Shown here in pieces: positions 23,722-37,458 of a DNA stretch of 64,000 nt. The notes beneath the pieces were generated by a model, which worked only from the letters and a program-made list of their open reading frames with translations, was not told the DNA's origin and did not search any database. The stretch lies in the sequence record LR756500.1, one strand, 5' to 3'. Position numbers and translations under genes: made by a program. The first letter of the stretch is position 1. Every line of letters starts with the position of its first letter.

Positions 23722-23820
23722 TTTCAACATTAAATATTTTTTTAATTTTTTTAACATTGATTGTCCTAAGGCATTCATATTTAATTAATTATATATTATT
23801 ATTTATATATTTATGTTAGC
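23722..23820 (+). repeat. 99-bp element, copy 1 (attI-like site at the end of cassette array 1)
   Basis: 97/99 identical to the reverse complement of 34987-35085; ends in ttatG|TTAGC exactly at the first cassette core. Confidence 0.85.
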
Positions 23821-23827
23821 AACAATA

Positions 23828-24196
23828 CTACAAACCGTACTTCGATTTAAGTTTTTCTAATTGCTCCAACTCAATCTTTTTAATTCTTTCCTTTTCTTGT
23901 CTATCTCGTTCATCTTGTCTTTTTTGGTATTCAATTTCTTCTTGTTCACACGCTTGTTTGTATTCATTTTCAGAAATTAGACCCAAATCAACAAGTGGAT
24001 GGTCGGTATTATCTTTACTATATTGGTTTATATTCACTTCATTTTTTGTGTATCCAAATCCTTCTGTAATATCATTAACAACCAATACTGTAAATGTGTT
24101 ATCTGTAAATTTTAACCATAAATCGCCACAATCTAATTTCAAATCAGAGATTGTTTTTCCTTTCAATTCATTGATATTCTGTATTTCATTTTTCAT
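23828..24196 (-). CDS. cassette 1 ORF, hypothetical
   Basis: Flanked by GTTAGCAACA (23815) and TGTTGCTAAC (24228), 10/10 complementary. Confidence 0.75.
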   Translation of the reverse strand: MKNEIQNINELKGKTISDLKLDCGDLWLKFTDNTFTVLVVNDITEGFGYTKNEVNINQYSKDNTDHPLVDLGLISENEYKQACEQEEIEYQKRQDERDRQEKERIKKIELEQLEKLKSKYGL

Positions 24197-24230
24197 ATTA
24201 TATAAATTAATCGTTTATAATCCGTACTGT

Positions 24231-24338
24231 TGCTAACACATTGTATATGTCGGTTTTGCCAATTGGCTTTTGTGCTTTTGTGCTTTGACTGAGAGTATGT
24301 GCGTGGCAAAACCGAACACATACAACCATTCGTTATAA
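24231..24338 (+). repeat. attC-like site C1
   Basis: TGCTAAC..TTGTATATG-CGGTTTTGCCA..TGGCAAAACCG..CATACAA..GTTATAA. Confidence 0.85.
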
Positions 24339-24353
24339 GTAATAAAATAAAAA

Positions 24354-24518
24354 CTACTTACTACTATTAATATCCTTAATCAAAATTTGAATTTCTTCAT
24401 TTTTATTTTCTAACTCTTTTTCAAATGCTTTTTGAAACTCAAACTTTTGTTCTTCACTTAACTCATTCAAATTTTGAATGTTAGTTTGTCTAATTTCTGC
24501 TTTAATTTTCTTTTCCAT
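24354..24518 (-). CDS. cassette 2 ORF, 54 aa (MEKKIKAEIRQ..., below ORF-track cutoff)
   Basis: Flanked by GTTATAAGTA and TACTTATAAC, 10/10. Confidence 0.6.
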   Translation of the reverse strand: MEKKIKAEIRQTNIQNLNELSEEQKFEFQKAFEKELENKNEEIQILIKDINSSK

Positions 24519-24544
24519 AATTTTACTGTTTTTATTTTACATAC

Positions 24545-24666
24545 TTATAACAACAAATATAAAACATTGCTGATGTAGTTTCTATTTATATTATACGTTT
24601 AATTTCAAGTTTTGTTTCATTTATTTACATTCATGTTGCAACTTTTTATATTTGTAATCGTTATAG
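24545..24666 (+). repeat. attC-like site C2
   Basis: TTATAAC-aa-CAAATATAAAA...TTTTATATTTG-taatc-GTTATAG; the right 60 bp are 56/60 identical to 33957-34016 (inverted). Confidence 0.85.
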
Positions 24667-24675
24667 ATAATAAAA

Positions 24676-24894
24676 TTAAAAATAGTCATGACTATCTATA
24701 AATAACTCCTTATATGTTTCATCAGTAAAAGAAAATCCTCTACCATCAACCGTCATTTCTACAACTTGCATCACTTTTAAGTAATTAATTATTGTGTCAA
24801 GTTCGTCTTCTAATTCTTTACCTATTTTAAACATACTCATAGCTGCCATTATCTCACCAAGTCTTTCAATATTTTCTTTTACTTTCTCATCCAT
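24676..24894 (-). CDS. cassette 3 ORF, hypothetical
   Basis: Flanked by GTTATAGATA and TATCTATAAC, 10/10. Confidence 0.7.
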   Translation of the reverse strand: MDEKVKENIERLGEIMAAMSMFKIGKELEDELDTIINYLKVMQVVEMTVDGRGFSFTDETYKELFIDSHDYF

Positions 24895-24922
24895 ATTAAT
24901 TAGTATTTTTAATTTTACATAT

Positions 24923-25007
24923 CTATAACAACAAATATAAGAAATAAATCTTACTTTGTCTATTTTTTAATGAAAAGATTTACTTCTCATATTTGCAACC
25001 GTTAGGC
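24923..25007 (+). repeat. attC-like site C3
   Basis: CTATAAC-aa-CAAATAT..AAATCTT..AAGATTT..ATATTTG-caacc-GTTAGGC. Confidence 0.85.
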
Positions 25008-25011
25008 ATAA

Positions 25012-25203
25012 TTATACTCTACCACTAAGGTAGTATTCTATTTCACTCTTACTAAAATCATCGGGCTTGTTTTTATAGTACTCCCTTAATTTTCCTTCGT
25101 GAACACCTTGTTCAAATGCCCATTTCATATCATCTAATGAATAACTACGCCTAACAAAGTATAAACGTAATGTTTTCAGTTTTTCAATCAATCTTTTTAT
25201 CAT
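25012..25203 (-). CDS. cassette 4 ORF, hypothetical; start codon lies inside attC C4
   Basis: Cores GTTAGGCATA and TACGCCTAAC (9/10); peptide LRLYFVRRS is encoded by the attC arm. Confidence 0.7.
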   Translation of the reverse strand: MIKRLIEKLKTLRLYFVRRSYSLDDMKWAFEQGVHEGKLREYYKNKPDDFSKSEIEYYLSGRV

Positions 25204-25268
25204 ATTATTAAATTTTGTATTTCAAATTAAGTTCAGTTAAACACTACGTTTATACTCAACTGTTATGG
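25149..25268 (+). repeat. attC-like site C4
   Basis: GCCTAAC-aa-AGTATAAACG...CGTTTATACT-caact-GTTATGG. Confidence 0.8.
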
Positions 25269-25269
25269 T

Positions 25270-25443
25270 TCATGCTAATCGCACAATTTGACGTTCATCT
25301 ACTTGTGAAAAACAATTTTCATTATATGGTTGTCCATCGTACCAAAATGAACTACAGTCCCATCTCGCAACATTCCATCCTTCGTAACTAAAATTATTAG
25401 GGCTAAATAAGTATACCCAATAGTAACCTTCTTTTCTTTCCAT
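25270..25443 (-). CDS. cassette 5 ORF, 57 aa (MERKEGYYWV...)
   Basis: Flanked by GTTATGGTT and AACCATAAC, 9/9; more plausible than track ORF 25299-25586. Confidence 0.65.
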   Translation of the reverse strand: MERKEGYYWVYLFSPNNFSYEGWNVARWDCSSFWYDGQPYNENCFSQVDERQIVRLA

Positions 25444-25489
25444 TTTATTTTTATTTTAAGTTTAACAATCTGATTAATAAAGCACGAAA

Positions 25490-25582
25490 CCATAACATTT
25501 GCTATATGTAACACGGCTGAAAAGTCCGTACTATTTTGAGAATGTCTGCTATGCCGTGCTACACATATCATTTTCGTTATGA
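25490..25582 (+). repeat. attC-like site C5
   Basis: CCATAAC..TATATG..CACGGC...GCCGTG..CATAT..GTTATGA. Confidence 0.8.
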
Positions 25583-25768
25583 ACAATGCTTAACGTCTGC
25601 CAACGCTATGTCATGTCCACATTTTTTACATTTACCAACCATAATTAAGTGGTCGAAAGCATTGTTCATAACACCAAATAAATGAAATTTCTCTATTTCA
25701 TCTATTGTCGGTAGTGCTTTTATTGTTACTTCTATACCACTTGGCAATTTTACTTTCATATTTTTCAT
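25577..25768 (-). CDS. cassette 6 ORF, hypothetical with CxxC; stop codon lies in the core site
   Basis: GTTATGAACA (25576) and TGTTCATAAC (25663), 10/10. Confidence 0.6.
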   Translation of the reverse strand: MKNMKVKLPSGIEVTIKALPTIDEIEKFHLFGVMNNAFDHLIMVGKCKKCGHDIALADVKHCS

Positions 25769-25922
25769 AGTCTATACCCATAGAACAAACCTTTCGCTTC
25801 GCAACACTAACATCAGATATATTCAATTTTTTATTTGTATTATCCAAAGTTTCTTCTAAAATTTTACTCTTTTCCATTTTATTAAATTTTGTGTTAGAAC
25901 TACGTATATGTAATCATTATAG
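25666..25922 (+). repeat. compound or degenerate attC-like site C6 (two AAC half-sites; GTT core mutated to ATT)
   Basis: TCATAAC at 25666, CACTAAC at 25805, ATTATAG at 25916 after the usual -taatc- spacer. Confidence 0.55.
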
Positions 25923-25926
25923 CCAA

Positions 25927-26277
25927 TTAAAGCACTGAATCATAATTGCTGCCTCTATCATCATAATCCCATTTAGAATCAAGCTCATAATATTCTTTTT
26001 TTGATTGTTGGTATTCGATTCCTTTTTGCAATTCTTTAATTTGAGAATTAAGTTTATCTATTTTATTTTGCCTTTGCTCTGAAATGTATTTTTGTGCATC
26101 ATTAACTGTTTTGAAAAATTTGTCGGAAGTCATAGATAAGCATATTCTCCAATTATACTCCGTACCAGCACTACGCAAAGACCTGACAAATGCGTAACTA
26201 TCGGTTAATTTGACGCAATCTCTTTCCCATATTCTAACTAAATCATCCTTTACAATATAAACTTTAAAAAACTCCAT
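25927..26277 (-). CDS. cassette ORF, hypothetical
   Basis: Between C6 and C7; cores ATTATAGCC and GACTATAAC (7/9). Confidence 0.7.
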   Translation of the reverse strand: MEFFKVYIVKDDLVRIWERDCVKLTDSYAFVRSLRSAGTEYNWRICLSMTSDKFFKTVNDAQKYISEQRQNKIDKLNSQIKELQKGIEYQQSKKEYYELDSKWDYDDRGSNYDSVL

Positions 26278-26295
26278 ATCTATAAAATTAACTGA

Positions 26296-26425
26296 CTATA
26301 ACCCGTGGTATGGTTAGTTGCCGTGTTAGTACTAAATTTAAGCGTTACTACCCGCTTGTAATTTTCTGTAATTTGATAGGAAAGTAGCCCGCAATCGGCA
26401 ACTAACCATACAACCAACGTTATGA
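26296..26425 (+). repeat. attC-like site C7
   Basis: CTATAAC..GTATGGTTAGTTGCCG...CGGCAACTAACCATAC..GTTATGA (16-bp perfect arm). Confidence 0.9.
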
Positions 26426-26431
26426 TTAATT

Positions 26432-26611
26432 TTACTCAACCACTTCAAAGTCACCAACATTAATTGGGTGATATACACCCAACCCCTGACATATTGTAAA
26501 TGTTCCATCTTCATTAAATCCTTGATATGGCTCATCCTCTTCAAATATATCACCACTTTTAAATGTTGTCATATACCCCTCATAATCTTTTAGTAATTTA
26601 ATTTTTTTCAT
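26432..26611 (-). CDS. cassette ORF, 59 aa (MKKIKLLKDYEG...)
   Basis: Cores GTTATGATTA and TAACCATAAC (9/10); more plausible than track ORF 26338-26556. Confidence 0.65.
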   Translation of the reverse strand: MKKIKLLKDYEGYMTTFKSGDIFEEDEPYQGFNEDGTFTICQGLGVYHPINVGDFEVVE

Positions 26612-26637
26612 ATTTTAATATTTAAGTAAAAAACTAA

Positions 26638-26731
26638 CCATAACAAGGTGTATAAAACATAACCTAATTACAAATTTTAAATTAACCACGGAACTATAAT
26701 AGGTTATGTTTCATACACCTAACCGTTAGCG
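26638..26731 (+). repeat. attC-like site C8
   Basis: CCATAAC-a-AGGTGTATAAAACATAACCTA...TAGGTTATGTTTCATACACCT-aacc-GTTAGCG. Confidence 0.9.
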
Positions 26732-26948
26732 GTAATTTAATAACAGTATTTTGAGCATCTTCATAGCTTTCAAATATCTTATTACATCTTGGACAAGAAC
26801 AACAACCGTCAACAACGGGTATAGCAAATAATTTTACTAAGTCAAATCGTAATTTTCCACATATTTCTCCTGTCATTTTTATATAATCAAGATTATCGTT
26901 ATCAATTTTTACATCACTTAATAATAAGTGTACTTCTTGTTCTGTCAT
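26694..26948 (-). CDS. cassette ORF, hypothetical; starts inside C9 and reads through into C8
   Basis: LFAIPVVDG is encoded by the attC arm; cores GTTAGCGGT and ACCGTCAAC (7/9). Confidence 0.55.
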   Translation of the reverse strand: MTEQEVHLLLSDVKIDNDNLDYIKMTGEICGKLRFDLVKLFAIPVVDGCCSCPRCNKIFESYEDAQNTVIKLPLTVRCMKHNLL

Positions 26949-27011
26949 ATTTATAAATTTATTAGTTATTACTATTAATTCCGAACTGAGTATATCTGAG
27001 TGTCGTTATAT
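26807..27011 (+). repeat. long degenerate attC-like site C9
   Basis: CGTCAAC..GGGTATAGC ... GTATATCTG..GTTATAT. Confidence 0.5.
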
Positions 27012-27021
27012 GCAATAAAAA

Positions 27022-27156
27022 TTATTTTTTGGATATTTTATATAACATTATAAATCCTATTAAAAAGTGATGGATGTTGTACAATTTGCCATTTCTATCA
27101 ACTTCGCTACAAAAATATCCAAATCCTATTACAAATGGCAAAATCTTTATATTCAT
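27022..27156 (-). CDS. cassette ORF, 44 aa
   Basis: Small ORF between C9 and C10. Confidence 0.45.
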   Translation of the reverse strand: MNIKILPFVIGFGYFCSEVDRNGKLYNIHHFLIGFIMLYKISKK

Positions 27157-27168
27157 AATTTTTACAGT

Positions 27169-27298
27169 TTATAACAACAAATATAAGCAATTATTTTCAT
27201 TACTTCCAAAATAAATGTTGTTTGTTAATATTAATTTTGTTCTTTTAATTAAGTTTCTACTAATTTTACTCAAATGTATATACCTGCAGACGTTAGCT
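27169..27298 (+). repeat. attC-like site C10
   Basis: TTATAAC-aa-CAAATATAAG ... TATATACCTGCAGAC-GTTAGCT. Confidence 0.7.
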
Positions 27299-27303
27299 GC
27301 CAT

Positions 27304-27495
27304 TTAAGGAAGCTCTGTAATAACATAGTTAATAGCCATGTTTATTTCTGTTTCAATTTTAAATCTATACCCATTAAGCTCATAAACATTTTCATCTTTC
27401 ATTTTTTCTAAACTAAACTTTTGCAATAGTTCATAAATCTGCGAAAGTGTAAGATTATTCACGTTGGCTTTTATGTTTAAGTTTATTGTCATCAT
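27304..27495 (-). CDS. cassette ORF, hypothetical
   Basis: Cores GTTAGCTGCC and GGTAGCTAAC (9/10). Confidence 0.65.
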   Translation of the reverse strand: MMTINLNIKANVNNLTLSQIYELLQKFSLEKMKDENVYELNGYRFKIETEINMAINYVITELP

Positions 27496-27508
27496 AATAA
27501 AAAATGGT

Positions 27509-27594
27509 AGCTAACATGATATATAAGCCATACAATGTTAAGGTTTATACTAATTTGATAGTGTCGGGTATGACTTATATACCCATTGTTAGAG
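27509..27594 (+). repeat. attC-like site C11
   Basis: AGCTAAC..TATATAAGCCATAC...GTATGACTTATATA..GTTAGAG. Confidence 0.85.
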
Positions 27595-27598
27595 TGCA

Positions 27599-27793
27599 TT
27601 ATCTAAACACTCCTAAAAAATCTTTTAAGCAACTTTCGTTACATACGTAAAATATTTTATTTCCCTTAAAATAACATTCTGGCACTTTCATTGCTTTATG
27701 CTTTTTAATTTGTTTTTTACAACTTTCACAATTAACGCACTCTAACAAAGTATTAGCGTTATTGCCTTTCTTGCTTTCTGATAAGTTTTCCAC
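27599..27793 (-). CDS. cassette ORF, CxxC hypothetical; start lies inside C12
   Basis: Cores GTTAGAGTGC and GCACTCTAAC, 10/10; GNNANTLLEC is encoded by the attC arm. Confidence 0.7.
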   Translation of the reverse strand: MENLSESKKGNNANTLLECVNCESCKKQIKKHKAMKVPECYFKGNKIFYVCNESCLKDFLGVFR

Positions 27794-27860
27794 ATTTTAT
27801 ATTTTAATGTTGTTAATAATTGTTTGTGATTGCGTTAACTCCAATACTCGACCATTAGGT
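27740..27860 (+). repeat. attC-like site C12 (GTT mutated to ATT)
   Basis: CTCTAAC-aa-AGTATT ... AATACT-cgacc-ATTAGGT. Confidence 0.65.
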
Positions 27861-28049
27861 TCAATCATTAATTTGTTTTGAATCTTCTATCATATTTTTG
27901 ATTCGTTCTTTGAATCTATGTTCGTATTCCTTATCAACTTCACCCAAGTCAGTTGTTTCAAGATATTTTTTAGGTAATCCTTTACCCATAGTTTCCTTGA
28001 GTTTATTTTGAAAATACTCAAGTTCTTCGTTTGTGTTTTTATTTTCCAT
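27861..28049 (-). CDS. cassette ORF, hypothetical
   Basis: Cores ATTAGGTT and AACCTAAC (7/8). Confidence 0.6.
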   Translation of the reverse strand: MENKNTNEELEYFQNKLKETMGKGLPKKYLETTDLGEVDKEYEHRFKERIKNMIEDSKQIND

Positions 28050-28091
28050 ATTTTATATTTTTTTACAAAGGTAAAACAAATTAATGACAAA

Positions 28092-28145
28092 ACCTAACAA
28101 ATGATAAACAACATTAAAACATTCGTTTATCTGCAACCGTTATAA
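28092..28145 (+). repeat. short attC-like site C13 (54 bp)
   Basis: ACCTAAC-aaat-GATAAAC...GTTTATC-tgcaacc-GTTATAA. Confidence 0.8.
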
Positions 28146-28155
28146 AACAGTTTGC

Positions 28156-28302
28156 TTAAAAAAGTTTTCCACATTTTATACATCTAACCAAATAAGCACC
28201 AACCTCAAACTTTTCAAATTCGTGTTTGCAAACAGATTTTATAACAGGTATATCCAATTGCTTTTTTTGTTTTCTAAATAAACATTTTCACAATTTTTTC
28301 AT
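28156..28302 (-). pseudogene. cassette ORF with TGA at codon 5 (MKKL*KCLFRKQKKQLDIPVIKSVCKH...)
   Basis: Cores GTTATAAAA and TTTTATAAC, 9/9; starts inside C14. Confidence 0.5.
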
Positions 28303-28362
28303 CTTGTATTTCAATTTAATTTTTACTAATTTTACGCAACTATATACCTGCAGCCTTTATAG
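28239..28362 (+). repeat. attC-like site C14 (GTT mutated to TTT)
   Basis: TTATAAC-a-GGTATAT..TTGC...GCAA..ATATACC-tgcagcc-TTTATAG. Confidence 0.65.
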
Positions 28363-28563
28363 TGCATTAAGGAAGTCCTCAGCATCCTTCACACTAAAGC
28401 ATTTTGTGAATTTACCTGTATTTTCATTCAACACTATTACAAAATCAACTGCTCCGTAATTAAATGCCAATTTAGTTGCTTCAATATCAAACACACATAA
28501 AGCATTATACTTTGGTATTACGGGTTGACAATCTGAATATTTTTTATCTAAAATTCTTAACAT
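28357..28563 (-). CDS. cassette ORF, hypothetical
   Basis: Cores TTTATAGT and ACTATAAC (7/8). Confidence 0.6.
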   Translation of the reverse strand: MLRILDKKYSDCQPVIPKYNALCVFDIEATKLAFNYGAVDFVIVLNENTGKFTKCFSVKDAEDFLNAL

Positions 28564-28582
28564 AGTTTTAAGTATTAACTTA

Positions 28583-28677
28583 CTATAACAATGTGTATAT
28601 GTAATGCAGCCAATAAGTTAATTGTAAATTGAAAGTATATGCAAGACAAACCGACATCATACCGCCAGCCATTATAG
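28583..28677 (+). repeat. attC-like site C15 (GTT mutated to ATT)
   Basis: CTATAAC..TGTATATGTAATG ... CATCATAC..cagcc-ATTATAG. Confidence 0.6.
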
Positions 28678-28681
28678 CCAA

Positions 28682-28840
28682 TTAAAAAGTAACACCATTA
28701 TCATATCCAACCTCTATTGATATATTTTCAATTTCAGTATTTAATATTTGTGCTATCTTTTCTTTTAGTTCGATTATCTTGGTTACATCAATCATTACAT
28801 CTTTGTAAACAGAAATTGAAATTAGTTCTTTTTCATTCAT
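28682..28840 (-). CDS. cassette ORF, 52 aa
   Basis: Small ORF between C15 and C16. Confidence 0.5.
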   Translation of the reverse strand: MNEKELISISVYKDVMIDVTKIIELKEKIAQILNTEIENISIEVGYDNGVTF

Positions 28841-28848
28841 ATTATCTA

Positions 28849-28880
28849 AGCAAACATTCTCATATACTTAACCATTATAG
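28849..28880 (+). repeat. collapsed attC remnant C16
   Basis: CATATACTT-aacc-ATTATAG retains only the right arm and a mutated core. Confidence 0.4.
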
Positions 28881-28889
28881 ATAATGAAA

Positions 28890-29180
28890 TTAAATATCCT
28901 TAAAAAGTCTTCTTGGTGCTACTAATCTTCTACCATCATCACATTTAATAATATATTCACCATCAGGTTCTATAACAGTATCTAAAACATTATAAATATT
29001 ACCAACTGTTATTGGAAAATTTGGGTTTGGATTTTCCGTACATAGAACTTGTTTAAGCATAAACTTATTATTAAATGTTCCATAAATATCTGAATTAACT
29101 ATTTTAATTTCACTATCTATAGCATCAGATATATGTAATTTTTCATCTTTTTTCATAATACTATTTTTATTAGTTAACAA
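28890..29180 (-). CDS. cassette ORF, hypothetical; starts inside C17
   Basis: Cores ATTATAGATA and TATCTATAGC (8/10); LHISDAIDS is encoded by the attC arm. Confidence 0.6.
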   Translation of the reverse strand: MLTNKNSIMKKDEKLHISDAIDSEIKIVNSDIYGTFNNKFMLKQVLCTENPNPNFPITVGNIYNVLDTVIEPDGEYIIKCDDGRRLVAPRRLFKDI

Positions 29181-29205
29181 AACAACTTAATACGCCTTGT
29201 TATGT
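29117..29205 (+). repeat. degenerate terminal attC-like site C17
   Basis: CTATAGC..GATATATGTAAT ... GTTATGT overlapping the 3' end of the MazG-like gene. Confidence 0.45.
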
Positions 29206-29600
29206 TTGTACGCCCTTGTTTGATTATAGAGCATTTTCAATTCGATATGCTTTTCAATATCAATGTTTCTTTGTCCTATAAAATCGAGCAATCTAATAAA
29301 TACGTCTGCAATTTCATCTTCAAAAGTATCCTTTACCTGAGTTCTGAAAATTTCCTCAAACTTTATCATATCGTTTTCTTTTGCTGCCAAATCTAAATCT
29401 TCTCGAATAGTTTTGCCGTCAATAATAAATTCAGCATCATCAATTTTGGCATATTGTCCTTTTCTATCAGCTTCCAAAGCCTCAGATAATTCAGAAACCA
29501 TAAGCATTAATAAAGTACCTGTTTCTCTTGGTTCGTCCCAAAAACCCTTTGCCTTTGCTCTTTCATGAAAATGTTTTGCTAATTCGTTTAAATTATTCAT
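29187..29600 (-). CDS. MazG-like nucleotide pyrophosphohydrolase
   Basis: LMVSELSEALEADRK and EDEIADVFIRLLD (ExxE...ExxD), C-terminal YKHNK. Confidence 0.85.
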   Translation of the reverse strand: MNNLNELAKHFHERAKAKGFWDEPRETGTLLMLMVSELSEALEADRKGQYAKIDDAEFIIDGKTIREDLDLAAKENDMIKFEEIFRTQVKDTFEDEIADVFIRLLDFIGQRNIDIEKHIELKMLYNQTRAYKHNKAY

Positions 29601-29622
29601 ATTATTTTATCTTTTAAGTTTT

Positions 29623-30039
29623 TTAAAAATTTATTACAGACAGATCTAAATAATATTGTGGATCTGCATAGTCTTGAATTTCAGAAACTAATCCATTAAA
29701 TTTCATTTTAAAATCTCTATTTATATTTATAAGGTAAACAATTCTTCCATGTGGTTTTATGGAATACCTATCTCCTTCGATATTTTCAACTGAGCGATTT
29801 TGCATTAAAACATATCCACCAATTGTTAATGCAATATCATCAATCATTTTTTCTTTATCCCCAATTTCTTCATGCCAAGGTATTGCAACTAAATCTAAAT
29901 CTCTATTCATTGAGCCATGCACAATAATATTATATCCATATTTTAAACCTATTTCTTTTATTATTTCAAAGTAAAATGAATATAAATTTGGTTTAGCATG
30001 AATTGGTTTAATGTCTGTTATAGGATTTGTTGTATTCAA
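29623..30039 (-). CDS. conserved phage hypothetical, nucleotidyltransferase-like
   Basis: VHGSMNRDLDLVAIPW resembles the GS-x-DxD motif. Confidence 0.5.
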   Translation of the reverse strand: MNTTNPITDIKPIHAKPNLYSFYFEIIKEIGLKYGYNIIVHGSMNRDLDLVAIPWHEEIGDKEKMIDDIALTIGGYVLMQNRSVENIEGDRYSIKPHGRIVYLININRDFKMKFNGLVSEIQDYADPQYYLDLSVINF

Positions 30040-30133
30040 ATATTTATTAAATAAAATTTTATTATTAAATTATATAACCAAAATTAATTATGTTTATAAT
30101 TTAATCAATTTTTATATTTTTAATTTTACATAC

Positions 30134-30167
30134 TTATAACAACTATTTTTACACTTAATCGTTAGTA
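30134..30167 (+). repeat. orphan collapsed attC-like remnant
   Basis: TTTTACATACTTATAAC (same context as C2) ... taatc-GTTAGTA. Confidence 0.45.
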
Positions 30168-30226
30168 ACAATATAAAAATAAAGTTTGTAGAATAACCGA
30201 TACAGACTCAATATTATTAAAAGAAT

Positions 30227-30658
30227 TTAAATAAAATCATATTTCATAATTATCTTATTATCGATTTCTTTAACAACAGTCCATCCCATTTTTAAATGAT
30301 ATTCTTTTGCAAAAACTGTATCTAAAAATATAGTTTTATATCCTAATAATTTTGCATATTCAAATCTTTTTTCAGTTAACATCAATCCATATCCATTACC
30401 TCTATATTCTGGTTCAACCCATAACAATAAATTCCAGGGAGATATAGTCCTATCTATTTCATTAATAGTATCAAATAATCCACAACCTATAGGTTTATCA
30501 TCTATTATCAATACATAACAAACTGAATCAGATTCATTATTTAAATACCTTCTAATCTCACTTAAACTATATTCATCATCAACTTGCCAACGTTCTTTCA
30601 TAATAGATGAAACATAATTAATATACATGTGAGTTAATTTTTCTATTTTAATTTCCAT
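30227..30658 (-). CDS. GNAT-family N-acetyltransferase
   Basis: LWVEPEYRGNGYG acetyl-CoA motif; YHLKMGW. Confidence 0.85.
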   Translation of the reverse strand: MEIKIEKLTHMYINYVSSIMKERWQVDDEYSLSEIRRYLNNESDSVCYVLIIDDKPIGCGLFDTINEIDRTISPWNLLLWVEPEYRGNGYGLMLTEKRFEYAKLLGYKTIFLDTVFAKEYHLKMGWTVVKEIDNKIIMKYDFI

Positions 30659-32079
30659 TCAAATTTATAATTGCCTGTTCCAAAACATCTATANNNNNNN
30701 NNNNNNNNNNNNNNNNNNNNNNNNNNNNNNNNNNNNNNNNNNNNNNNNNNNNNNNNNNNNNNNNNNNNNNNNNNNNNNNNNNNNNNNNNNNNNNNNNNNN
30801 NNNNNNNNNNNNNNNNNNNNNNNNNNNNNNNNNNNNNNNNNNNNNNNNNNNNNNNNNNNNNNNNNNNNNNNNNNNNNNNNNNNNNNNNNNNNNNNNNNNN
30901 NNNNNNNNNNNNNNNNNNNNNNNNNNNNNNNNNNNNNNNNNNNNNNNNNNNNNNGGCTCCACCAACAACCGAAGTATTTAATTTATTAGCAAACCGTAAA
31001 AGCTCCCATTCATTTTCTTTAGCAACTTGATTTAAATTTTTACGTAAGGATCCGAAGGTCATTAATGATACTAACTCACCTTCATAATATAAACCTAATT
31101 TAATAGCAGCATTAGTATTGCCCTGTAAATGGTTCCTATTTAAAAATTCTCTACTATCACCAGAATTAACGGTTTTAATTACACATTTTCTAGCATACAC
31201 TTTATCAGTAGATAAATTTAATAAATTCTTTATTCTTGATTTTACTATATCTCTTTTGTTATACCAAACATCTTCCCATATATGTATTAAATTAATTCCC
31301 AATTCTTTGCATCTATTACTTTTATCTATATGATATTCTTTAGGTTTATTAAATTCATTATGCCAATATACTCCATTATGTTCAAATGCTATATTTTTAT
31401 CTTCAATATAAATATCAAGTTCTCTATTTTTTAATTCTTTTTTAGAATTAATTCTAAATGGTTTTAAATAAATGTCTTTTATCCAATCTATTAATTCTAT
31501 TTCAGAATTACTTTTTCCGTGATTAGGATTACATTTTAAACATGGATTAATATTTATATTTATTCTTCTATATAATAATTGAGAATCTATTATTGATATA
31601 CTTTTACATTCAACACATTCTATTTTTATTTTTTGTTGATCATCCCATTCTATTATTTTAATTTTATCTTTTAATTTTTCTTTAGCAAAAGGAAAATAAT
31701 ATTTATCTTTAAAATAATTTGATTGTGTTATATGTTGTACTCCATATCTTTTTAGAACTGTTATTCTTGTTCTTTTTTCTTTTAAAACTATTGCACATTT
31801 TCTACTACAGCTAGAAGAATAACCAGGCATTATACCCATAAATTTAGATGAAGGTATTTTATTACCACATACTTCACATTTTGGAATTTCAGTTTTATCA
31901 TGTAATGCATGATAAAGTTTTTCTTTAAAAGACGTTAATTTTAGATTATTATTTATAGAATATTTTTCTATTTCTAATAATAGATTAGGATAATTATTTT
32001 TAAAAAATTCAATTCTAGTAGTACTAGATGTAAGTTTTCCGTTTTTTATTAATATTTTATTTAAATCATTTGATAACAT
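30643..32079 (-). CDS. Hef-like homing endonuclease (Zn ribbons, Vsr/PD-(D/E)xK-like nuclease, GNAT-like C-terminus); contains an N gap at 30694-30954
   Basis: ELDIYIEDKNIAFEHNGVYWH, LIHIWEDVW, ARKC..FLNRNHLQG, WELLRFA. Confidence 0.7.
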   Translation of the reverse strand: MLSNDLNKILIKNGKLTSSTTRIEFFKNNYPNLLLEIEKYSINNNLKLTSFKEKLYHALHDKTEIPKCEVCGNKIPSSKFMGIMPGYSSSCSRKCAIVLKEKRTRITVLKRYGVQHITQSNYFKDKYYFPFAKEKLKDKIKIIEWDDQQKIKIECVECKSISIIDSQLLYRRINININPCLKCNPNHGKSNSEIELIDWIKDIYLKPFRINSKKELKNRELDIYIEDKNIAFEHNGVYWHNEFNKPKEYHIDKSNRCKELGINLIHIWEDVWYNKRDIVKSRIKNLLNLSTDKVYARKCVIKTVNSGDSREFLNRNHLQGNTNAAIKLGLYYEGELVSLMTFGSLRKNLNQVAKENEWELLRFANKLNTSVVGGAXXXXXXXXXXXXXXXXXXXXXXXXXXXXXXXXXXXXXXXXXXXXXXXXXXXXXXXXXXXXXXXXXXXXXXXXXXXXXXXXXXXXXXXYRCFGTGNYKFEWKLK

Positions 32080-32117
32080 TTAATTATATGGTTAATTATT
32101 ATTATGTTTAATAAAAT

Positions 32118-32996
32118 TTAAACATAATCACCTTCCTGTATTTCAGGTAACTCTCCCATCTTATTTCTATACAATAATGTAATCATCGGTAAATTTACCC
32201 ATCTTAAATCCTTCTCAACTAATTGATTTTTAATACGTTCAAGAATGTCCCTGTCACTTCCCCGAGGTTCGCTGCGTACTGGTGAAGTAAGAAATTGCTC
32301 TCTTACATTTCTATATCTTAAATCCTTAAATTCCTTCAAATCCCAACAAAATGTTGAATGCCAACTTTCTGTTATATGAGAAATATTATTCCCCCCTATA
32401 TGTTTAACAACTCCTCTTTCTGGTCTACAATATGTATCTGTTCCTGTTTTATATCTTTTTATTATAGCTGTCGAAGAAAAGAATTTTGCTTTAGGATATC
32501 TAGTTATTGCCTTAGCCATATATTCTAGATGGTTAGGAAGCCATATATCATCGTGATCTAAACGACAAATAAAATTTACACCATCCCTTACTGCTTTATC
32601 AATAGCTATATTTGCAGCAACATCAGACCCTGAATGCCAAAGATCTGCCCCCCTGAATCGGATCCTTTCACCTGGCAGTTCCAGATTTTCATATACGATT
32701 TTTGAGTATTCGAATGATTCAACTAAAGGCTTGATTTCATTATCACTTTCATAGTCATCACCCATTAGATAAATTTTGTAGTTTTGGTATGATTGGTTTT
32801 TGATAGATTGAAGAGCTTCTTGTAATCTCATAGGAGTAGTACCATCGCTTCTTTTATAGGTAGCAACTATAATACCAAATCTTATATTTGTTCTGTGTTC
32901 TATTTTTTTGAATTTATCTATTTTATCCGATAAATCATTTTGTTTATTTTGATCTTCTTGATTAAAATTTTGAAAATTTTCTAATAAGGTGTCCAT
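32118..32996 (-). CDS. family 2 glycosyltransferase
   Basis: IIVATYKR, YLMGDD, RLDHDDIWLPNHL (DxD). Confidence 0.8.
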   Translation of the reverse strand: MDTLLENFQNFNQEDQNKQNDLSDKIDKFKKIEHRTNIRFGIIVATYKRSDGTTPMRLQEALQSIKNQSYQNYKIYLMGDDYESDNEIKPLVESFEYSKIVYENLELPGERIRFRGADLWHSGSDVAANIAIDKAVRDGVNFICRLDHDDIWLPNHLEYMAKAITRYPKAKFFSSTAIIKRYKTGTDTYCRPERGVVKHIGGNNISHITESWHSTFCWDLKEFKDLRYRNVREQFLTSPVRSEPRGSDRDILERIKNQLVEKDLRWVNLPMITLLYRNKMGELPEIQEGDYV

Positions 32997-33040: not shown

Positions 33041-33060
33041 AAACTTTTTTATTATATTTA
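33041..33060 (+). promoter_or_regulatory. repeated promoter-like motif upstream of cassette array 2
   Basis: AAACTTTTTTATTATATTTA at the strand-switch point. Confidence 0.6.
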
Positions 33061-33160
33061 AATTTAATAATATTTAGTTATATGAATCAAAATTTAAAAA
33101 TATTAATAAAATGAGAACAATAAAGGCACAGAAGACTTAATTACTGGTATAATTATTGAA

Positions 33161-33316
33161 ATGAAAAACGAAGACAACTTTGAAAGAAAAGCTGCACAGC
33201 GAATAATCGAAGCACTAACAGATGAAAATAATTTGAATATACCCCCAGTTATCGTTTCAATTTGCGATGGTCTTTTGTTTGAATGTACTGATAGAGAAAC
33301 AATACATAACGAATGA
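33161..33316 (+). CDS. cassette ORF, 51 aa
   Basis: LNIPPVIVS is encoded by the half-site (GTTATCG at 33248). Confidence 0.5.
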   Translation: MKNEDNFERKAAQRIIEALTDENNLNIPPVIVSICDGLLFECTDRETIHNE

Positions 33317-33437
33317 TGCGTTTATTCTCGTTGCCGTATTAGGAGCAGAAATTATTAACCATAAAATAAACACAATATGAAAAAAGGAACTTCAAATAAG
33401 CAGAAAGCAGGCAATAGAATTAAACGCAATGTTATAA
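33304..33437 (-). repeat. attC-like site D1
   Basis: ACATAAC..TGCGTTTATTCTCGTTGCC...GGCAATAGAATTAAACGCA-at-GTTATAA. Confidence 0.8.
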
Positions 33438-33604
33438 AATTGTTGCCCGACCGGAGAATTTATGATGAATACACATTTATAATTGGAAGTATGCAACACG
33501 GAACATCCTACATGGGTAAATCGGACGAAACTATAAAACACCACGACAATATAATCGCATGGCTTAAAAAACGTAGAGAGGAGTTTAAGGGCAATGTTTT
33601 ATAA
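33377..33604 (+). CDS. cassette ORF, hypothetical; starts inside D1 and stops in the next core
   Basis: Cores GTTATAAAA and TTTTATAAC, 9/9. Confidence 0.65.
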   Translation: MKKGTSNKQKAGNRIKRNVIKLLPDRRIYDEYTFIIGSMQHGTSYMGKSDETIKHHDNIIAWLKKRREEFKGNVL

Positions 33605-33731
33605 CGGACGGCGGTTGGCTTTCGTTGCCGATGCTCGATTAACGACAAATGATTATTAATAGTAAAAATTTAAAATTATGCAGACAGATTCTAAAAACCA
33701 AATAGGCAATGAAGCTAATACCATGTTATGT
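33599..33731 (-). repeat. attC-like site D2
   Basis: TTATAAC..GGTTGGCTTTCGTTGCC...GGCAATGAAGCTAATACC-at-GTTATGT. Confidence 0.8.
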
Positions 33732-33905
33732 GAAGTGTATTTTGTAAAAAAAGGTAAAAAGTTTATGAAAGGACATGGATATAGCACATTAAAAGGATAT
33801 AAATTTAGTTGGACTTTCAATAAAAACGAAGCAAGAAAAATGGAATATAGCACAGCAAATAGTTTAGCAATTTCAAGCGGTGGTGTATTGAAACAACAAC
33901 TATAA
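33678..33905 (+). CDS. cassette ORF, hypothetical; starts inside D2
   Basis: GNEANTMLCEV is encoded by the attC arm. Confidence 0.65.
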   Translation: MQTDSKNQIGNEANTMLCEVYFVKKGKKFMKGHGYSTLKGYKFSWTFNKNEARKMEYSTANSLAISSGGVLKQQL

Positions 33906-33952
33906 ATGGTCAATTAGTAGAAATTCCACGCTACGACCCTCTTTATTATTGT

Positions 33953-34067
33953 GGCTAACGGTTGCAAATATAAAACGTTGCAACATGAATGTAATTAAAT
34001 GAAACAAAACTTGAAAAAATGCTCGAATAACCACGGATGCCCAACTGTTTTATACCATATGTTAGCG
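33953..34067 (-). repeat. attC-like site D3
   Basis: GGCTAAC..TATAAAAC...GTTTTATA..GTTAGCG; body shared with C2. Confidence 0.85.
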
Positions 34068-34103
34068 GTAGTGATTTTTTAACTTATTAATATTTAACGA
34101 TTT

Positions 34104-34991
34104 ATGAAAACAAAAAGATTTGATAGTTCAGAAGGTAATGTTTGGAAATATGTATTTGACTTTGAAAATGCAGTTGCCGAAGCGGTACTTTACAAATATG
34201 AAAACTTTTACAAAAGGACTGTACTTTGCGTGAGTGTGCAAAGTGGATGCCCTGTTGGTTGCAAATTTTGCGGAACTGGCAAAAAGTTTATTAGAAACCT
34301 TACAAACTTAGAAATAGTTGCACAGGTTAAACATTGCTTAAAAGACATGAATATTGAAAATGTTAATTCGGCTAGTGATCGTTTCCAAATAATGTTTATG
34401 AGTATGGGTGAACCTACTTTAAATATTGATAATGTAATAACGGCAATAAAGGATTTAAACAACTTATATCCAAATGCTGAATTACTTATTTCAACTATGG
34501 GGGCAAAAAACAATACCGCTTTTGAAAAACTGTTAAAAGTAAGTATTGAAATACAAAAGGTTGGTTTGCAATTTTCAGTACATGAAGCATTTGAAGAAAA
34601 AAGAAACCAATTAATATCATTTAAAAATAAATTGAATTTACGTGAAATGCGTGATTTTGGCATTGAGTGGAATAGGCAAACAAAACGCCCTGTATATGTG
34701 AATTATTGCATTGGAGAAACAAACCAAAGCAATGAAGAGATGGATAGGCTTAAAGACTTATTTAGCCCTGCTCTTTTCAATTTTACATTTTCGGTTATTT
34801 GCTCTTCTGATGAAAACATGAAAGATAAAGGATATAGAGAACTGAACAAGATAAACACAATTACTTCATCATTTGTTGAATGTGGTTATAATGTTCGAGT
34901 TTTCGACCCTGCTGGTCAAGATGATATTGGGGGCGGGTGCGGACAATTATGGTATGTACAAAACTGGATGCGTGACCATCATTACCGCTAA
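34104..34991 (+). CDS. RlmN/Cfr-family radical SAM methyltransferase carried as a gene cassette
   Basis: LCVSVQSGCPVGCKFC, FMSMGEP, DIGGGCGQL; cores GTTAGCGGTA and TACCGCTAAC, 10/10. Confidence 0.85.
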   Translation: MKTKRFDSSEGNVWKYVFDFENAVAEAVLYKYENFYKRTVLCVSVQSGCPVGCKFCGTGKKFIRNLTNLEIVAQVKHCLKDMNIENVNSASDRFQIMFMSMGEPTLNIDNVITAIKDLNNLYPNAELLISTMGAKNNTAFEKLLKVSIEIQKVGLQFSVHEAFEEKRNQLISFKNKLNLREMRDFGIEWNRQTKRPVYVNYCIGETNQSNEEMDRLKDLFSPALFNFTFSVICSSDENMKDKGYRELNKINTITSSFVECGYNVRVFDPAGQDDIGGGCGQLWYVQNWMRDHHYR

Positions 34992-35085
34992 CATAAATAT
35001 ATAAATAATAATATATAATTAATTAAATATGAATGCCTTAGGACAATCAATGTTAATAAAATTTAAAAAATATTTAATGTTGAAA
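34987..35085 (-). repeat. 99-bp element, copy 2 (attI-like site at the end of array 2)
   Basis: 97/99 identical to the reverse complement of 23722-23820; contains TATAAATA facing the LRR gene. Confidence 0.85.
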
Positions 35086-35108
35086 AATTATTTAATTTTA
35101 TAAAATAA

Positions 35109-35759
35109 ATGGAATATAACGATAAAAATGGATTAGAATTAATAGCTGAATTAGCTAAAGTTAGTACTGATAAGCTAATGAATTTAACTATTTTAATACT
35201 AAGTAGTAATAAATTGACTTCTATACCAAAAGAGATAGGATTACTTACTAATTTAAGAGAATTACGTTTATCCAATAATGAATTAACATCTGTACCAAAA
35301 GAGATAGGAAATTTGGTAAATTTACAACATTTACATTTAAATAGTAATAAATTAACTTCTATACCATTAGAAATATTTAATCTTATAAAATTAACTAAAT
35401 TATTATTATATAGTAATAAATTGACTTCTATACCAAAAGAGATAGGAAATTTAATAAATTTACAGCGTTTATTTTTAAGTTATAATGCATTGACTTCATT
35501 ACCTAAAGAGATAGGAAATTTGGTAAATTTATGTGAATTACTATATACAAATACTAAGATGGTTTCAATACCTATTGAGTTAGTTAAGTTAAATGTTTTT
35601 CCAAAGTTAGATTTATCAGAATTAACTCTGCCGTTATGGGCTGAATTATTTCAAGAAGATAAATTTAAAGTTATTAAGCATAAAGATTTTCCAAAAGATT
35701 TAAGAAATCATCCATGGTTTATTGATGTAGCTTATGCAGATGATTTTGGACTTATTTAA
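35109..35759 (+). CDS. leucine-rich repeat protein
   Basis: About six 23-aa repeats LTSIPKEIGNLxNLxxLxLxxN, with DNA-level repeats TTGACTTCTATACCAAAAGAGATAGGA. Confidence 0.9.
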   Translation: MEYNDKNGLELIAELAKVSTDKLMNLTILILSSNKLTSIPKEIGLLTNLRELRLSNNELTSVPKEIGNLVNLQHLHLNSNKLTSIPLEIFNLIKLTKLLLYSNKLTSIPKEIGNLINLQRLFLSYNALTSLPKEIGNLVNLCELLYTNTKMVSIPIELVKLNVFPKLDLSELTLPLWAELFQEDKFKVIKHKDFPKDLRNHPWFIDVAYADDFGLI

Positions 35760-36309: not shown

Positions 36310-37458
36310 TTATTCTATATTTGGATAATTAAAAAGTTTATTTTGATAGTTTTTAAGAATAAGATTTCCATTTTCATCTTTACCTTGATAGTATTCAGGA
36401 AGAATAGGAATTTTACCTCCTCCACCTGGAGCATCAATTACAAAGGTAGGTATAGCATAGCCTGAAGTATTACCTCTAAGATTAAACATTATTTCTATTC
36501 CTTTTTCGATTGAGGTTCTAAAATGTTCTGAACCTAGAATTGGATCACATTGATATAAATAGTACGGTCTAACTCTAACTTTAAGTAATTCATGAAATAA
36601 TTTTTTAAGAATTAATGAGTCATCATTAATTCCTTTAAGTAATACCGTTTGAGATCCTAATGGAATTCCAGCATTTGCTAATAAGTTGCAAGCTTGTTTT
36701 ACTTCAGGAGTAATTTCATCTGGATGAGTAAAATGTATACTCATAAAAAGAGGATGATATTTTTGTAGAATATTTATTAGTTTTTTGTTTATTCTTTGTG
36801 GAAGTATAACTGGAACTTTGGTTCCAATTCTTATTATTTCAATATGTTTGATATTTCTAATAGTTGATAATAAATAATCAAGTTGTGAATCAGGTAAAGT
36901 TAATGGATCACCGCCAGAAATTATTACATCTCTTATTTCAGTATGTTCTCGCAAATAATTAAAAGCAGATTCCCAATTATTTAAATTTTTTTCTTTTGCT
37001 ACAATATGAGAACGTGTACAATATCTACAATATGTTGCACAAAAATCTGTTGCTAAAAATAAAACTCTATCTGGATATCGATGTATAATATTAGGTACCG
37101 GATTATCTTCATTTTCATTTAATGGATCTGATAATTCACCCTCATTTATATAATATTCATTTACAATCGGAATAACGCTTTTTCTTAATGATTGCAATGA
37201 ATTATTTTTATCTATTAAGCTAGAATAATAAGGTGTTATTCTTATAGGTAATGAATCTTTATTATTATCATTTATAGATTTTTCATTATCATTTAAATTA
37301 AAAAAATCATTTAATTGTTTAATGTTTGTAATACTATTTTTTATTTGCCATCGCCAGTCATTCCACTGTTCTTTTGATGTATTAGGAAAATTTTCTTTTA
37401 AATATTCTATTGATTTTTCACTAGGTTCTATAAGTGAGATATCATCATTTTTGTCCAT
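36310..37458 (-). CDS. kamA: lysine 2,3-aminomutase (KamA-family radical SAM/PLP enzyme)
   Basis: WNDWRWQ, HRYPDRVL, CATYCRYC, SGGDPL, PYYLYQCD, DAPGGGGK (PLP Lys). Confidence 0.9.
   Translation of the reverse strand: MDKNDDISLIEPSEKSIEYLKENFPNTSKEQWNDWRWQIKNSITNIKQLNDFFNLNDNEKSINDNNKDSLPIRITPYYSSLIDKNNSLQSLRKSVIPIVNEYYINEGELSDPLNENEDNPVPNIIHRYPDRVLFLATDFCATYCRYCTRSHIVAKEKNLNNWESAFNYLREHTEIRDVIISGGDPLTLPDSQLDYLLSTIRNIKHIEIIRIGTKVPVILPQRINKKLINILQKYHPLFMSIHFTHPDEITPEVKQACNLLANAGIPLGSQTVLLKGINDDSLILKKLFHELLKVRVRPYYLYQCDPILGSEHFRTSIEKGIEIMFNLRGNTSGYAIPTFVIDAPGGGGKIPILPEYYQGKDENGNLILKNYQNKLFNYPNIE

Follow-up and report, generated by a model that had tools for sequence, protein, structure and literature searches.

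What is the short run of ORFs and inverted repeats on the plus strand of an uncultured 462-kb phage genome (LR756500.1), and is it a second copy of the cassette system that fills a longer array nearby? We addressed this question in a 64,000-nt stretch of that genome, referred to here as the window, in which a masked run of N at 18949-19234 was left unread. Our analysis indicates a short, partly decayed array of four cassettes at 33077-34992 (array 2), built like a bacterial integron but without an integrase of its own, and we regard this reading as likely. The sequence features listed in a preliminary description of the locus are all present at their places, whereas its interpretation holds only in part. 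The features are as follows.

33041-33060 (+): phage promoter-like motif at the head of array 2, an exact match to AAACTTTTTTATTATATTTA
33077-33125 (+): R'-like core GTTATATG plus a leader module that opens array 2
33161-33316 (+): ORF of 51 aa in cassette A, whose 5' side is incomplete; its end core ACATAAC is at 33304-33310
33304-33437 (+): hairpin site D1, with core ..TAAC, arms 33317-33335 and 33410-33428 and core GTTATAA at 33431; the start codon of ORF 33377 lies in its loop
33377-33604 (+): ORF of 75 aa in cassette B (33311-33605); its stop TAA lies inside the end core TTTTATAAC
33599-33731 (+): hairpin site D2 (33596-33734 as scored), with arms 33613-33629 and 33705-33722 and core GTTATGTGAAG at 33725; the start codon of ORF 33678 lies in its loop
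33678-33905 (+): ORF of 75 aa in cassette C, truncated at its 3' end
33906-33959 (+): orphan 48-nt tail plus foreign end core GTGGCTAAC, the remnant of another cassette's 3' end
33950-34070 (+): hairpin site D3, a chimera
34104-34991 (+): RlmN/Cfr-like radical SAM (rSAM) gene of 295 aa in cassette D (33960-34992); its stop TAA lies inside the end core TACCGCTAAC
34993-35090 (+): 99-bp terminal element, a 36-nt AT-rich attI-like spacer followed by ATG and about 19 codons that may be the 5' stump of an integrase gene
23722-23814 (-): inverted copy of the 99-bp element, closing array 1
23815-30170 (-): array 1, with nine strong and about five weaker hairpin sites and matched cores

Each cassette is an ORF bracketed by a GTTA-type core upstream and its reverse complement (..TAAC) downstream, with D1-D3 at the junctions. 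In cassette B, GTTATAAAA at 33431-33439 matches TTTTATAAC at 33597-33605 over 9/9 positions, and in cassette D, GTTAGCGGTA at 34061-34070 matches TACCGCTAAC at 34983-34992 over 10/10. The AT-rich 9/9 core is only modest evidence on its own, whereas the G+C-rich 10/10 core is strong evidence. In cassette C, GTTATGTG at 33725 does not match GTGGCTAAC at 33951-33959, and for cassette A only an approximate partner core lies upstream, at 33077. The leader module at 33077 aligns with the GTTATAAGTATGTAAAATTAAAAATA module that heads array 1 (30155) and three of its cassettes. Over 34 ORFs in 7 arrays, the five bases outside TAAC/GTTA are complementary across the ORF in 131/170 positions (77%), but within one hairpin in only 63/175 (36%); for array 2 the values across the ORF are 5/5, 0/5 (the rearranged cassette) and 5/5. 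However, the same cores (GTTAGCAAC / GTTGCTAAC) recur around unrelated ORFs.

The three hairpin sites differ in how far they stand out from chance. A covariance model built from nine array-1 sites only, the test that had been set for the relationship between the arrays, clearly recovered only D3 (49.5 bits, E 3.5e-7), which was its only strong hit outside the training set; D2 was marginal (15.1 bits, E 3) and D1 was not found. With a position-weight plus pairing model trained only on sites from other phages, window sites ranked 1-7 genome-wide with D3 third, D2 ranked 16th, and D1 was again not detected. Conversely, D1 has the best arm complementarity of the three, matched by only one other site among about 1,100 TAAC..GTTA pairs outside the arrays (p about 0.001, compared to 0.009 for D3 and 0.019 for D2). 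Folding energies of D1-D3 are not exceptional, with z from -2.0 to +1.5 (-1.4 and -2.0 for D1), and that of the 99-bp element is also unremarkable, so that the argument cannot rest on thermodynamics. Generic TAAC..GTTA folding and inverted-repeat scans were swamped by AT-rich noise. The folding of D1-D3, no better than that of shuffles, together with the AT-only 9/9 core and the lack of homologues for ORFs 33161 and 33377, would fit ordinary intergenic terminator hairpins between small phage genes with cores that match by chance. We consider this very unlikely, since it is contradicted by the G+C-rich 10/10 core, by the excess of complementarity across ORFs, by the near restriction of high-scoring sites to the arrays across the 429-kb genome record and by the junctions in cultured isolates described below. 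Moreover, the hairpins are not followed by T-runs.

The preliminary description proposed that array 2 is an independent second locus of the same system, mirroring array 1 about the strand-switch point. It is indeed a second array of the same system, lies on the opposite strand, diverges from the 30.2-33.0 kb segment and ends in the same 99-bp element. However, the two arrays are not independent. Their terminal elements (34993-35090 and 23722-23814), which are the only two copies in the genome record, are 98% identical, with identity beginning exactly after GCTAAC. Furthermore, the 5' half of D3 (33956-34016) is 93% identical over 61 nt to site S2 of array 1, while from 34017 onwards D3 and the following gene are 90% identical over 976 nt to the site and gene in the related phage contig L010. 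Freshwater contigs also break at 34017. The description also inferred that the motif at 33041 drives the array. The motif is one of 9 matches in the window against 0.17 expected, but its role as a promoter is inferred from sequence alone.

The mismatched cores around ORF 33678 had been taken to suggest the loss of an intervening cassette. They do mark a rearrangement, but not simply a missing cassette. Intact copies of the ORF 33678 cassette in two further related contigs, L026 and L027, end in TTCGCCTAAC, which matches their own GTTAGGCGAA (10/10), whereas the window copy has lost its last ~20 nt and is fused to the 48-nt tail, which is absent from the intact copies and carries a core that fails to match at 0/5 outer bases. 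Fourteen homologues of this ORF at 70-89% identity are conserved from the R' core (residues GEVY) to SSGG, and the window C-terminus deviates from them. The hairpins equivalent to D2 in L026 and L027 have different arm sequences that still pair.

Comparison with related phages suggests what the system is, which the preliminary description did not address. The array-1 model also found arrays in L010, L011, L013, L014, L026 and L027. In L010, L011, L013 and L014, the arrays lie immediately upstream of a Xer-like tyrosine recombinase gene of 266-277 aa on the same strand and end at ..AAC| directly before it, and the 99-bp element sits where the integrase-proximal element sits in these contigs and in the cultured Polaribacter phage Freya. 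Related sea-water phages thus carry the same arrays beside a simpler recombinase, and in the cultured Polaribacter phages, too, the arrays end at ..AAC| directly before a Xer-like tyrosine recombinase gene. L013 and L014 have flanks that are 95-99% identical but completely different arrays, bounded by GCTCAAC| and TAAC|. Likewise, the isolates Freya_1, 5, 8, 9 and 10 have 100% identical flanks and differ only by blocks bounded at ..AAC|, with Freya_1 carrying the empty site. In 14 sites from other phages, 93.7% of cells pair against 70% in shuffles, with 59 double-compensated cells against 24 expected, and slid controls give 29-51%. TAAC and GTTA are invariant in 9 window sites and in 14-16 sites from relatives, and the stems covary; by this criterion for attC sites, inverse core RYYYAAC and core GTTRRRY at the ends of imperfect palindromes, D3 is clear and D1 and D2 are weak.

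We therefore read array 2 as one of three integrase-less arrays of an integron-like system for site-specific gene-cassette recombination, carried by Bacteroidota-type phages. Our data establish the structure of the sites, the matched cores, the positions of the junctions, the linkage to the recombinase in relatives, and the gain and loss of cassettes between isogenic isolates. In contrast, catalysis by that recombinase, the use of single-stranded or double-stranded substrates, the attI role of the AT-rich element and expression from the 33041 motif are inferred. In this view, units are joined at the invariant AAC/GTT, and the element abutting ..TAAC| would be the attI equivalent. The crossover position is not uniform, however. 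For ORF 33678, conservation starts at R' while both flanking hairpins differ between contexts, and one freshwater contig keeps the 3' arm of a site but switches cassette after GTTA. Exchange may therefore occur at both cores, or the hairpins evolve fast. A model in which the upstream hairpin always travels with its ORF, which we first favoured, fits the rSAM cassette but not the ORF 33678 cassette.

No intact recombinase was found in the 462-kb genome, where TIGR02249, PF00589 and PF00239 gave no hit, so no activity can be claimed here. Only an 88-aa N-terminal remnant remains, an integrase pseudogene that lies elsewhere in the genome with two cassette-like ORFs. The peptide of the 99-bp element could be a further stump: in an anchored comparison it resembles the N-terminus of the Ingeline integrase, and only 3 of 4,636 genome 19-mers, probably including the element's own two copies, score as well (shuffle p 0.014). 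This comparison is only suggestive; BLASTP against an integrase was not significant. With the recombinase surviving only in this form, we read array 2 as frozen and decaying, with a truncated first cassette, a third cassette lacking its 3' end and a chimeric D3, and any further shuffling would need a recombinase supplied in trans. Logan contigs of the source sample show no excision variant; two apparent joints are array-1 contigs matching the shared pieces.

The system shares with integrons and CALINs (clusters of attC sites lacking an integrase) the arrays of mostly promoterless small ORFs, the imperfect hairpins that begin ..YAAC and end GTTR.., the matching of outer core bases across the ORF rather than within the hairpin, crossover at AAC/GTT, and a conserved platform site next to a tyrosine recombinase gene that is empty or filled in isogenic genomes. 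It differs in its recombinase, which in relatives scores 145 bits against TIGR02249, below the cut-off of 265, aligns to IntI4 in two pieces that skip about 48 residues where IntI4 carries its specific insertion, and aligns continuously to XerA. Moreover, in classical integrons the cassette ORFs read away from attI, whereas here all ORFs read towards the conserved element and the recombinase gene, which lies downstream of the array on the same strand, and the hairpin loops often hold the ribosome-binding region, the start codon and the first ~17 codons of the following ORF. A further difference is that conservation blocks suggest exchange at both cores. In inverted-integrase integrons, such as that of Treponema denticola, the integrase and the cassette ORFs are also on the same strand, but intI lies upstream of the cassettes rather than after the last one.

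A fragment of an ordinary chromosomal integron picked up from the host as a CALIN, and serviced if at all by the host's IntI, would also explain the RYYYAAC..GTTRRRY appearance, the matched cores, the absence of an integrase and the higher G+C content of the arrays (32% in array 2 and 27.5% in array 1 against a 24% background). CALINs with 2-3 attC sites, found with IntegronFinder or HattCI, have been reported in 17 of 10,705 phage genomes, including virulent phages and a Polaribacter phage (Qi et al. 2023, PMC9892861). The genome studied here is not listed there and carries about 14 plus 3 sites in two arrays and a third small locus; a search of that paper by terms alone revealed no mention of a link to a phage Xer-like recombinase or of reversed ORF polarity. 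We consider a host-derived CALIN unlikely, since the same arrays sit beside a phage-encoded Xer-like recombinase in several unrelated phage contigs and in cultured lytic isolates, and ORF polarity relative to the integrase end is opposite to the classical layout. Furthermore, the cassette genes are phage-type, with PHROG hits, and the rSAM gene is an ordinary non-cassette gene in four other phage contigs. A scan of 185,579 species genomes found only one 54-aa fragment of the rSAM gene, in a Ferruginibacter MAG without an array.

Modular shuffling as described for the PeSL cassettes of T4-type phages, in which conserved promoter-terminator stem-loops serve as portable homology for general recombination (PMC2839356, PMC4122927), appears even less likely. 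Here, too, small ORFs are separated by stem-loops in a hyperplastic region of a large phage, some 3' arms (TTATATTTG..) resemble the phage's own promoter motif, and D3 is joined at a short shared run inside the loop. However, the sites are diverse and are not repeats, with a mean column identity of 42-49%, different arms and only TAAC/GTTA invariant, and the promoter motif occurs once, at the head of array 2. In addition, junctions are precise at AAC|, the cores are cassette-specific inverse complements, and the arrays are linked to a tyrosine recombinase gene.

Integrons are treated as a bacterial, and recently archaeal, device defined by IntI. A broader reading, which we consider about as likely as not, is that phages of Bacteroidota, from 40-kb cultured Polaribacter phages to this 462-kb phage, carry their own integron analogue: a platform driven by a Xer-type recombinase without the IntI domain, with cassettes in reversed polarity and recombination hairpins that double as translation-start or leader modules for the next gene. 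Turnover would be fast enough for sister isolates from one host to hold from none to about twelve annotated ORFs in the array, and the two arrays and the integrase pseudogene in the phage studied here would be the remains of such a platform. The same cassette logic next to a simpler enzyme in virulent-type phages bears on how IntI and attC recombination arose from Xer systems, and would explain how these phages exchange small accessory genes at single-base precision. The system is experimentally tractable, as cultured, non-pathogenic hosts and isogenic phages with empty and filled platforms already exist in the Freya series. Moreover, an annotated integrase in these phages need not mean lysogeny, which is how it was read in PMC8776804.

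Regarding the cassette contents, the small ORFs of array 2 hit no Pfam, NCBIfam or PHROG family, and ORF 33377 has no homologue in 5.8 billion proteins other than itself. A fixed LxE leader motif in the loop-encoded N-termini was considered but dropped, because D1 and the array-1 site S4 do not show it. A search of viral contigs with the flanking GT2 gene found no relatives, and so offered no syntenic locus of a close relative for comparison. The rSAM gene occurs as a complete cassette in the contig L002 (97% aa identity) and in freshwater contigs, and homology to the window ends exactly at 34992. Its product matches Pfam Radical_SAM and shows the CxxxCxxC cluster with the upstream Cys (LCVSVQSGCPVGCKFCGTG) and the C-terminal GGGCGQL motif of RlmN/Cfr RNA methyltransferases. 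NCBIfam RlmN/Cfr hits range from E 1e-32 to 1e-19, but all lie far below the family cut-offs (best score 113 bits against 422) and cover model positions 75-342 only, as the protein lacks the N-terminal domain of ~70 residues.

The sequence is 100% identical to LR756500.1, an unannotated record of 462,018 bp from an uncultured phage with a G+C content of about 24%, and also matches a 429-kb IMG/VR record (G000). The only sequencing runs holding the whole stretch are from a groundwater metagenome. A run of 286 N at 18949-19234 was excluded from the analysis. The promoter-like 20-mer at the head of the region is one of nine copies in the window (6135, 6606, 13795, 33041, 40775, 45378, 45465, 53933 and 55360), mostly at the heads of gene blocks, whereas only 0.17 matches are expected. 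It is followed by four ORFs on the + strand, each of which is preceded by a core beginning with GTTA and followed by a core ending with TAAC. The main features are:
33041-33060, the promoter-like 20-mer.
ORF 33377 (+), cores GTTATAAAA (33431) and TTTTATAAC (33605), matching at 9/9 positions.
ORF 33678 (+), cores GTTATGTG and GTGGCTAAC, which do not match.
34104-34991 (+), radical SAM gene, cores GTTAGCGGTA (34061) and TACCGCTAAC (34992), matching at 10/10 positions.
99-bp element, immediately after 34992.
23722-23814, inverted, the only other copy of the 99-bp element in the genome, immediately after the last core of array 1.
23815-30170 (minus strand), array 1.

The TAA of the core serves as the stop codon of both ORF 33377 and the radical SAM gene. 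The sequence features listed in the preliminary description were thus all confirmed. Array 1 comprises nine long imperfect hairpins which start with ..TAAC and end with GTTA.., as well as about five weaker ones. We built a covariance model from the nine sites and searched the window with filters off. A second model, which combined position weights and arm pairing and was trained only on sites from other phages, ranks window sites 1-7 across the whole genome. In addition, arm complementarity was scored for every TAAC..GTTA pair in the genome.

Table. Support for the three hairpin sites of array 2 (model trained on array 1; rank in 429 kb with the model trained on other phages; p for arm complementarity).
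D3 (33950-34070): 49.5 bits, E 3.5e-7, the only strong non-training hit; rank 3; p 0.009.
D2 (33596-33734): 15.1 bits, E 3; rank 16; p 0.019.
D1 (33304-33437): not listed; not in the top 45; p about 0.001.

The preliminary description had named a failure of D1-D3 to score with a model trained only on array 1 as evidence against its reading, and by this criterion only D3 passes cleanly. The folding energies of D1-D3 are ordinary. D1 and D2 are divergent, long-looped sites whose loops contain the start codons of ORF 33377 and ORF 33678, while their 3′ arm and GTTA core lie inside those ORFs. The array-1 sites S4 and S12 are built in the same way. Two isolated short TAAC..GTTA hairpins with high arm complementarity (scores 17 and 14) were also detected outside the window at G000 172440-172492 and 61132-61185, and these may represent solitary sites.

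A comparison of 34 ORFs from seven arrays, two in the window and five elsewhere, revealed a signature of cassettes. The five bases outside the invariant TAAC/GTTA are complementary between the upstream and the downstream core of the same ORF in 131 of 170 positions, but between the two ends of one hairpin in only 63 of 175. In sites from other phages the stems covary: 93.7% of cells pair compared to 70% in shuffles, 59 cells are double-compensated compared to 24 expected, and slid controls give 29-51% pairing. The position just outside TAAC/GTTA is unpaired in 9 of 14 sites in this alignment, which was fitted to the model. In integrons, this is the pattern left by recombination inside the core of attC sites. 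Moreover, the same extended cores, GTTAGCAAC and GTTGCTAAC, bracket unrelated ORFs in three different phages (window 24237 and 23815, minus strand; 7006 and 7640 in the phage contig L002; 3975 and 4100 in L017, a record from the Polaribacter phage set), suggesting that cores are drawn from a limited repertoire.

Related phages supply the parts which are missing here. The radical SAM protein has six relatives in IMG/VR. In L002/L010 (97% amino acid identity) its gene is a complete cassette with a hairpin on both sides, while in four other phage contigs (L004-L007) it is an ordinary gene without such flanks. The RlmN/Cfr-like gene (34104-34991) lacks the N-terminal domain but keeps the catalytic cysteines, and a 54-aa fragment at 87% identity was found in a Ferruginibacter MAG (L008, 10001-10162). 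DNA homology between the window and L010 runs from 34017 to exactly 34992, and freshwater contigs break at the same two points and carry the L010-type loop before 34017. D3 is therefore a chimera, since its 5′ half is 93% identical to array-1 site S2 and its 3′ half belongs to the radical SAM cassette. Larger accessory genes also travel as cassettes: a 40-kb phage contig (L026, 1-7601) has model-positive sites between genes for an N6/N4 DNA methylase, endonuclease VII, a PAPS-reductase-like protein and the homologue of ORF 33678.

Right after the array of L002 lies a gene for a 266-aa tyrosine recombinase. Its best matches are XerA (170 bits, cut-off 220) and the integron-integrase family (145 bits, cut-off 265). 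It aligns continuously to XerA of Pyrococcus, but to Vibrio IntI4 only in two pieces that skip about 48 residues, where IntI carries its specific insertion. Relatives of this recombinase at 76% and 35% identity again have arrays of model-positive sites directly upstream on the same strand, and in every case the last cassette ends with ..TAAC against an AT-rich element that runs up to the recombinase start codon. The contigs L013 and L014 have flanks which are 95-99% identical but wholly different arrays, bounded by GCTCAAC on the left and TAAC on the right, with the junction directly after the AAC.

Homologues of the recombinase with 35-38% identity are also encoded by cultured phages, namely the Polaribacter phages Freya, Danklef and Leef and the Cellulophaga phage Ingeline. 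The genomes of Freya_1 to Freya_10 range from 43,978 to 48,920 bp, and the five isolates compared in detail (Freya_1, 5, 8, 9 and 10) have 100% identical flanks and differ only upstream of the recombinase gene, where they carry from zero to twelve annotated ORFs.

Table. State of the array in Freya isolates (coordinates of the Freya_10 record).
Freya_1: empty site, TTGTTTACAAC joined directly to ACCCCTATAAC..
Freya_9: lacks the last 307 nt.
Freya_5: ends at 902.
Freya_8: lacks 1-902.

Every breakpoint is directly after an ..AAC core. Danklef (Danklef_1) shares a block of 1,169 nt at 99.6% identity, which is bounded by AAC at both ends. The study describing these phages interpreted the integrase as a sign of lysogeny and does not mention cassettes (PMC8776804). 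A survey of 10,705 phage genomes reported 17 small CALINs and does not list the genome studied here (PMC9892861), and our literature searches found no description of this arrangement.

No tyrosine or serine recombinase domain was found in the 462 kb of this phage. However, a protein search revealed an 88-aa frame at LR756500.1 48593-48820, outside the window, which is 51% identical to residues 30-110 of the L002 recombinase but has neither a start codon nor a catalytic domain. This integrase pseudogene (within LR756500.1 47093-50320; G000 about 311.3-312.3 kb) is preceded by two small cassette-like ORFs and directly followed by the phage promoter motif, and represents a third, tiny array locus. 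The 99-bp element consists of a 36-nt AT-rich spacer, an ATG and about 19 codons. The encoded peptide resembles the N-terminus of the Ingeline recombinase: only 3 of 4,636 genome 19-mers, probably including the element's own two copies, score as well (shuffle p 0.014), although BLASTP does not detect the similarity. We therefore infer that the element is an attI-like site with a recombinase stump.

The non-matching cores around ORF 33678, from which the preliminary description had suggested a lost intervening cassette, can be explained by comparison with intact copies. Fourteen homologues at 70-89% identity are nearly invariant from the residues encoded at the GTTA core to “SSGG”, whereas their first ~17 residues, encoded in the hairpin, vary. 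Intact cassettes in the contigs L026 and L027 have GTTAGGCGAA and TTCGCCTAAC as matched cores, while the window copy diverges about 20 nt before that end and continues with 48 unrelated nucleotides and the foreign core GTGGCTAAC. Thus, the cassette lost its 3′ end and is fused to the tail of another. The N-terminal ~17 residues encoded by hairpin loops and 3′ arms share a loose pattern (..N.AN..L.EV) with a fixed reading frame across the GTTA core (window 33678-33735 and 27746-27793, the latter on the minus strand; L013 7613-7740; proteins P0003-P0014), whereas the rest of the protein is about 95% conserved. The hairpins seem to act as interchangeable translation-start modules.

Overall, array 2 is real, belongs to the same system as array 1 and is partly decayed. 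We regard this system as an integron-like cassette platform of phages. Its ORFs read toward the recombinase-proximal element, whereas those of a classical integron read away from the corresponding site. While crossover directly after AAC next to this element is shown by our comparisons, the attI-like role of the 99-bp element and expression of the arrays are inferred. Some 3′ arms resemble the phage promoter motif, and array 2 opens with the same leader module as array 1. The evidence on which hairpin belongs to which ORF is divided: the radical SAM gene keeps its upstream hairpin across contexts, ORF 33678 keeps neither flanking hairpin, and one freshwater contig switches cassette after GTTA. 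Exchange at both cores, by an enzyme without the strand-selecting domain of IntI, would explain these three findings, but this is conjecture.

The segment between the two arrays (30227-32996, minus strand) carries genes for a GNAT acetyltransferase, a 478-aa protein with a weak REase_MTES_1575 match, and a family-2 glycosyltransferase for which no relative was found in IMG/VR, and its G+C content drops to 17% at 30-31 kb. Directly after the 99-bp element lies a gene for a leucine-rich-repeat protein (35109-35759) with four 69-nt tandem units (35171-35584), and a second radical SAM gene, of the lysine 2,3-aminomutase type (LAM_C, E 5e-16), is located at 36310-37458 on the minus strand.
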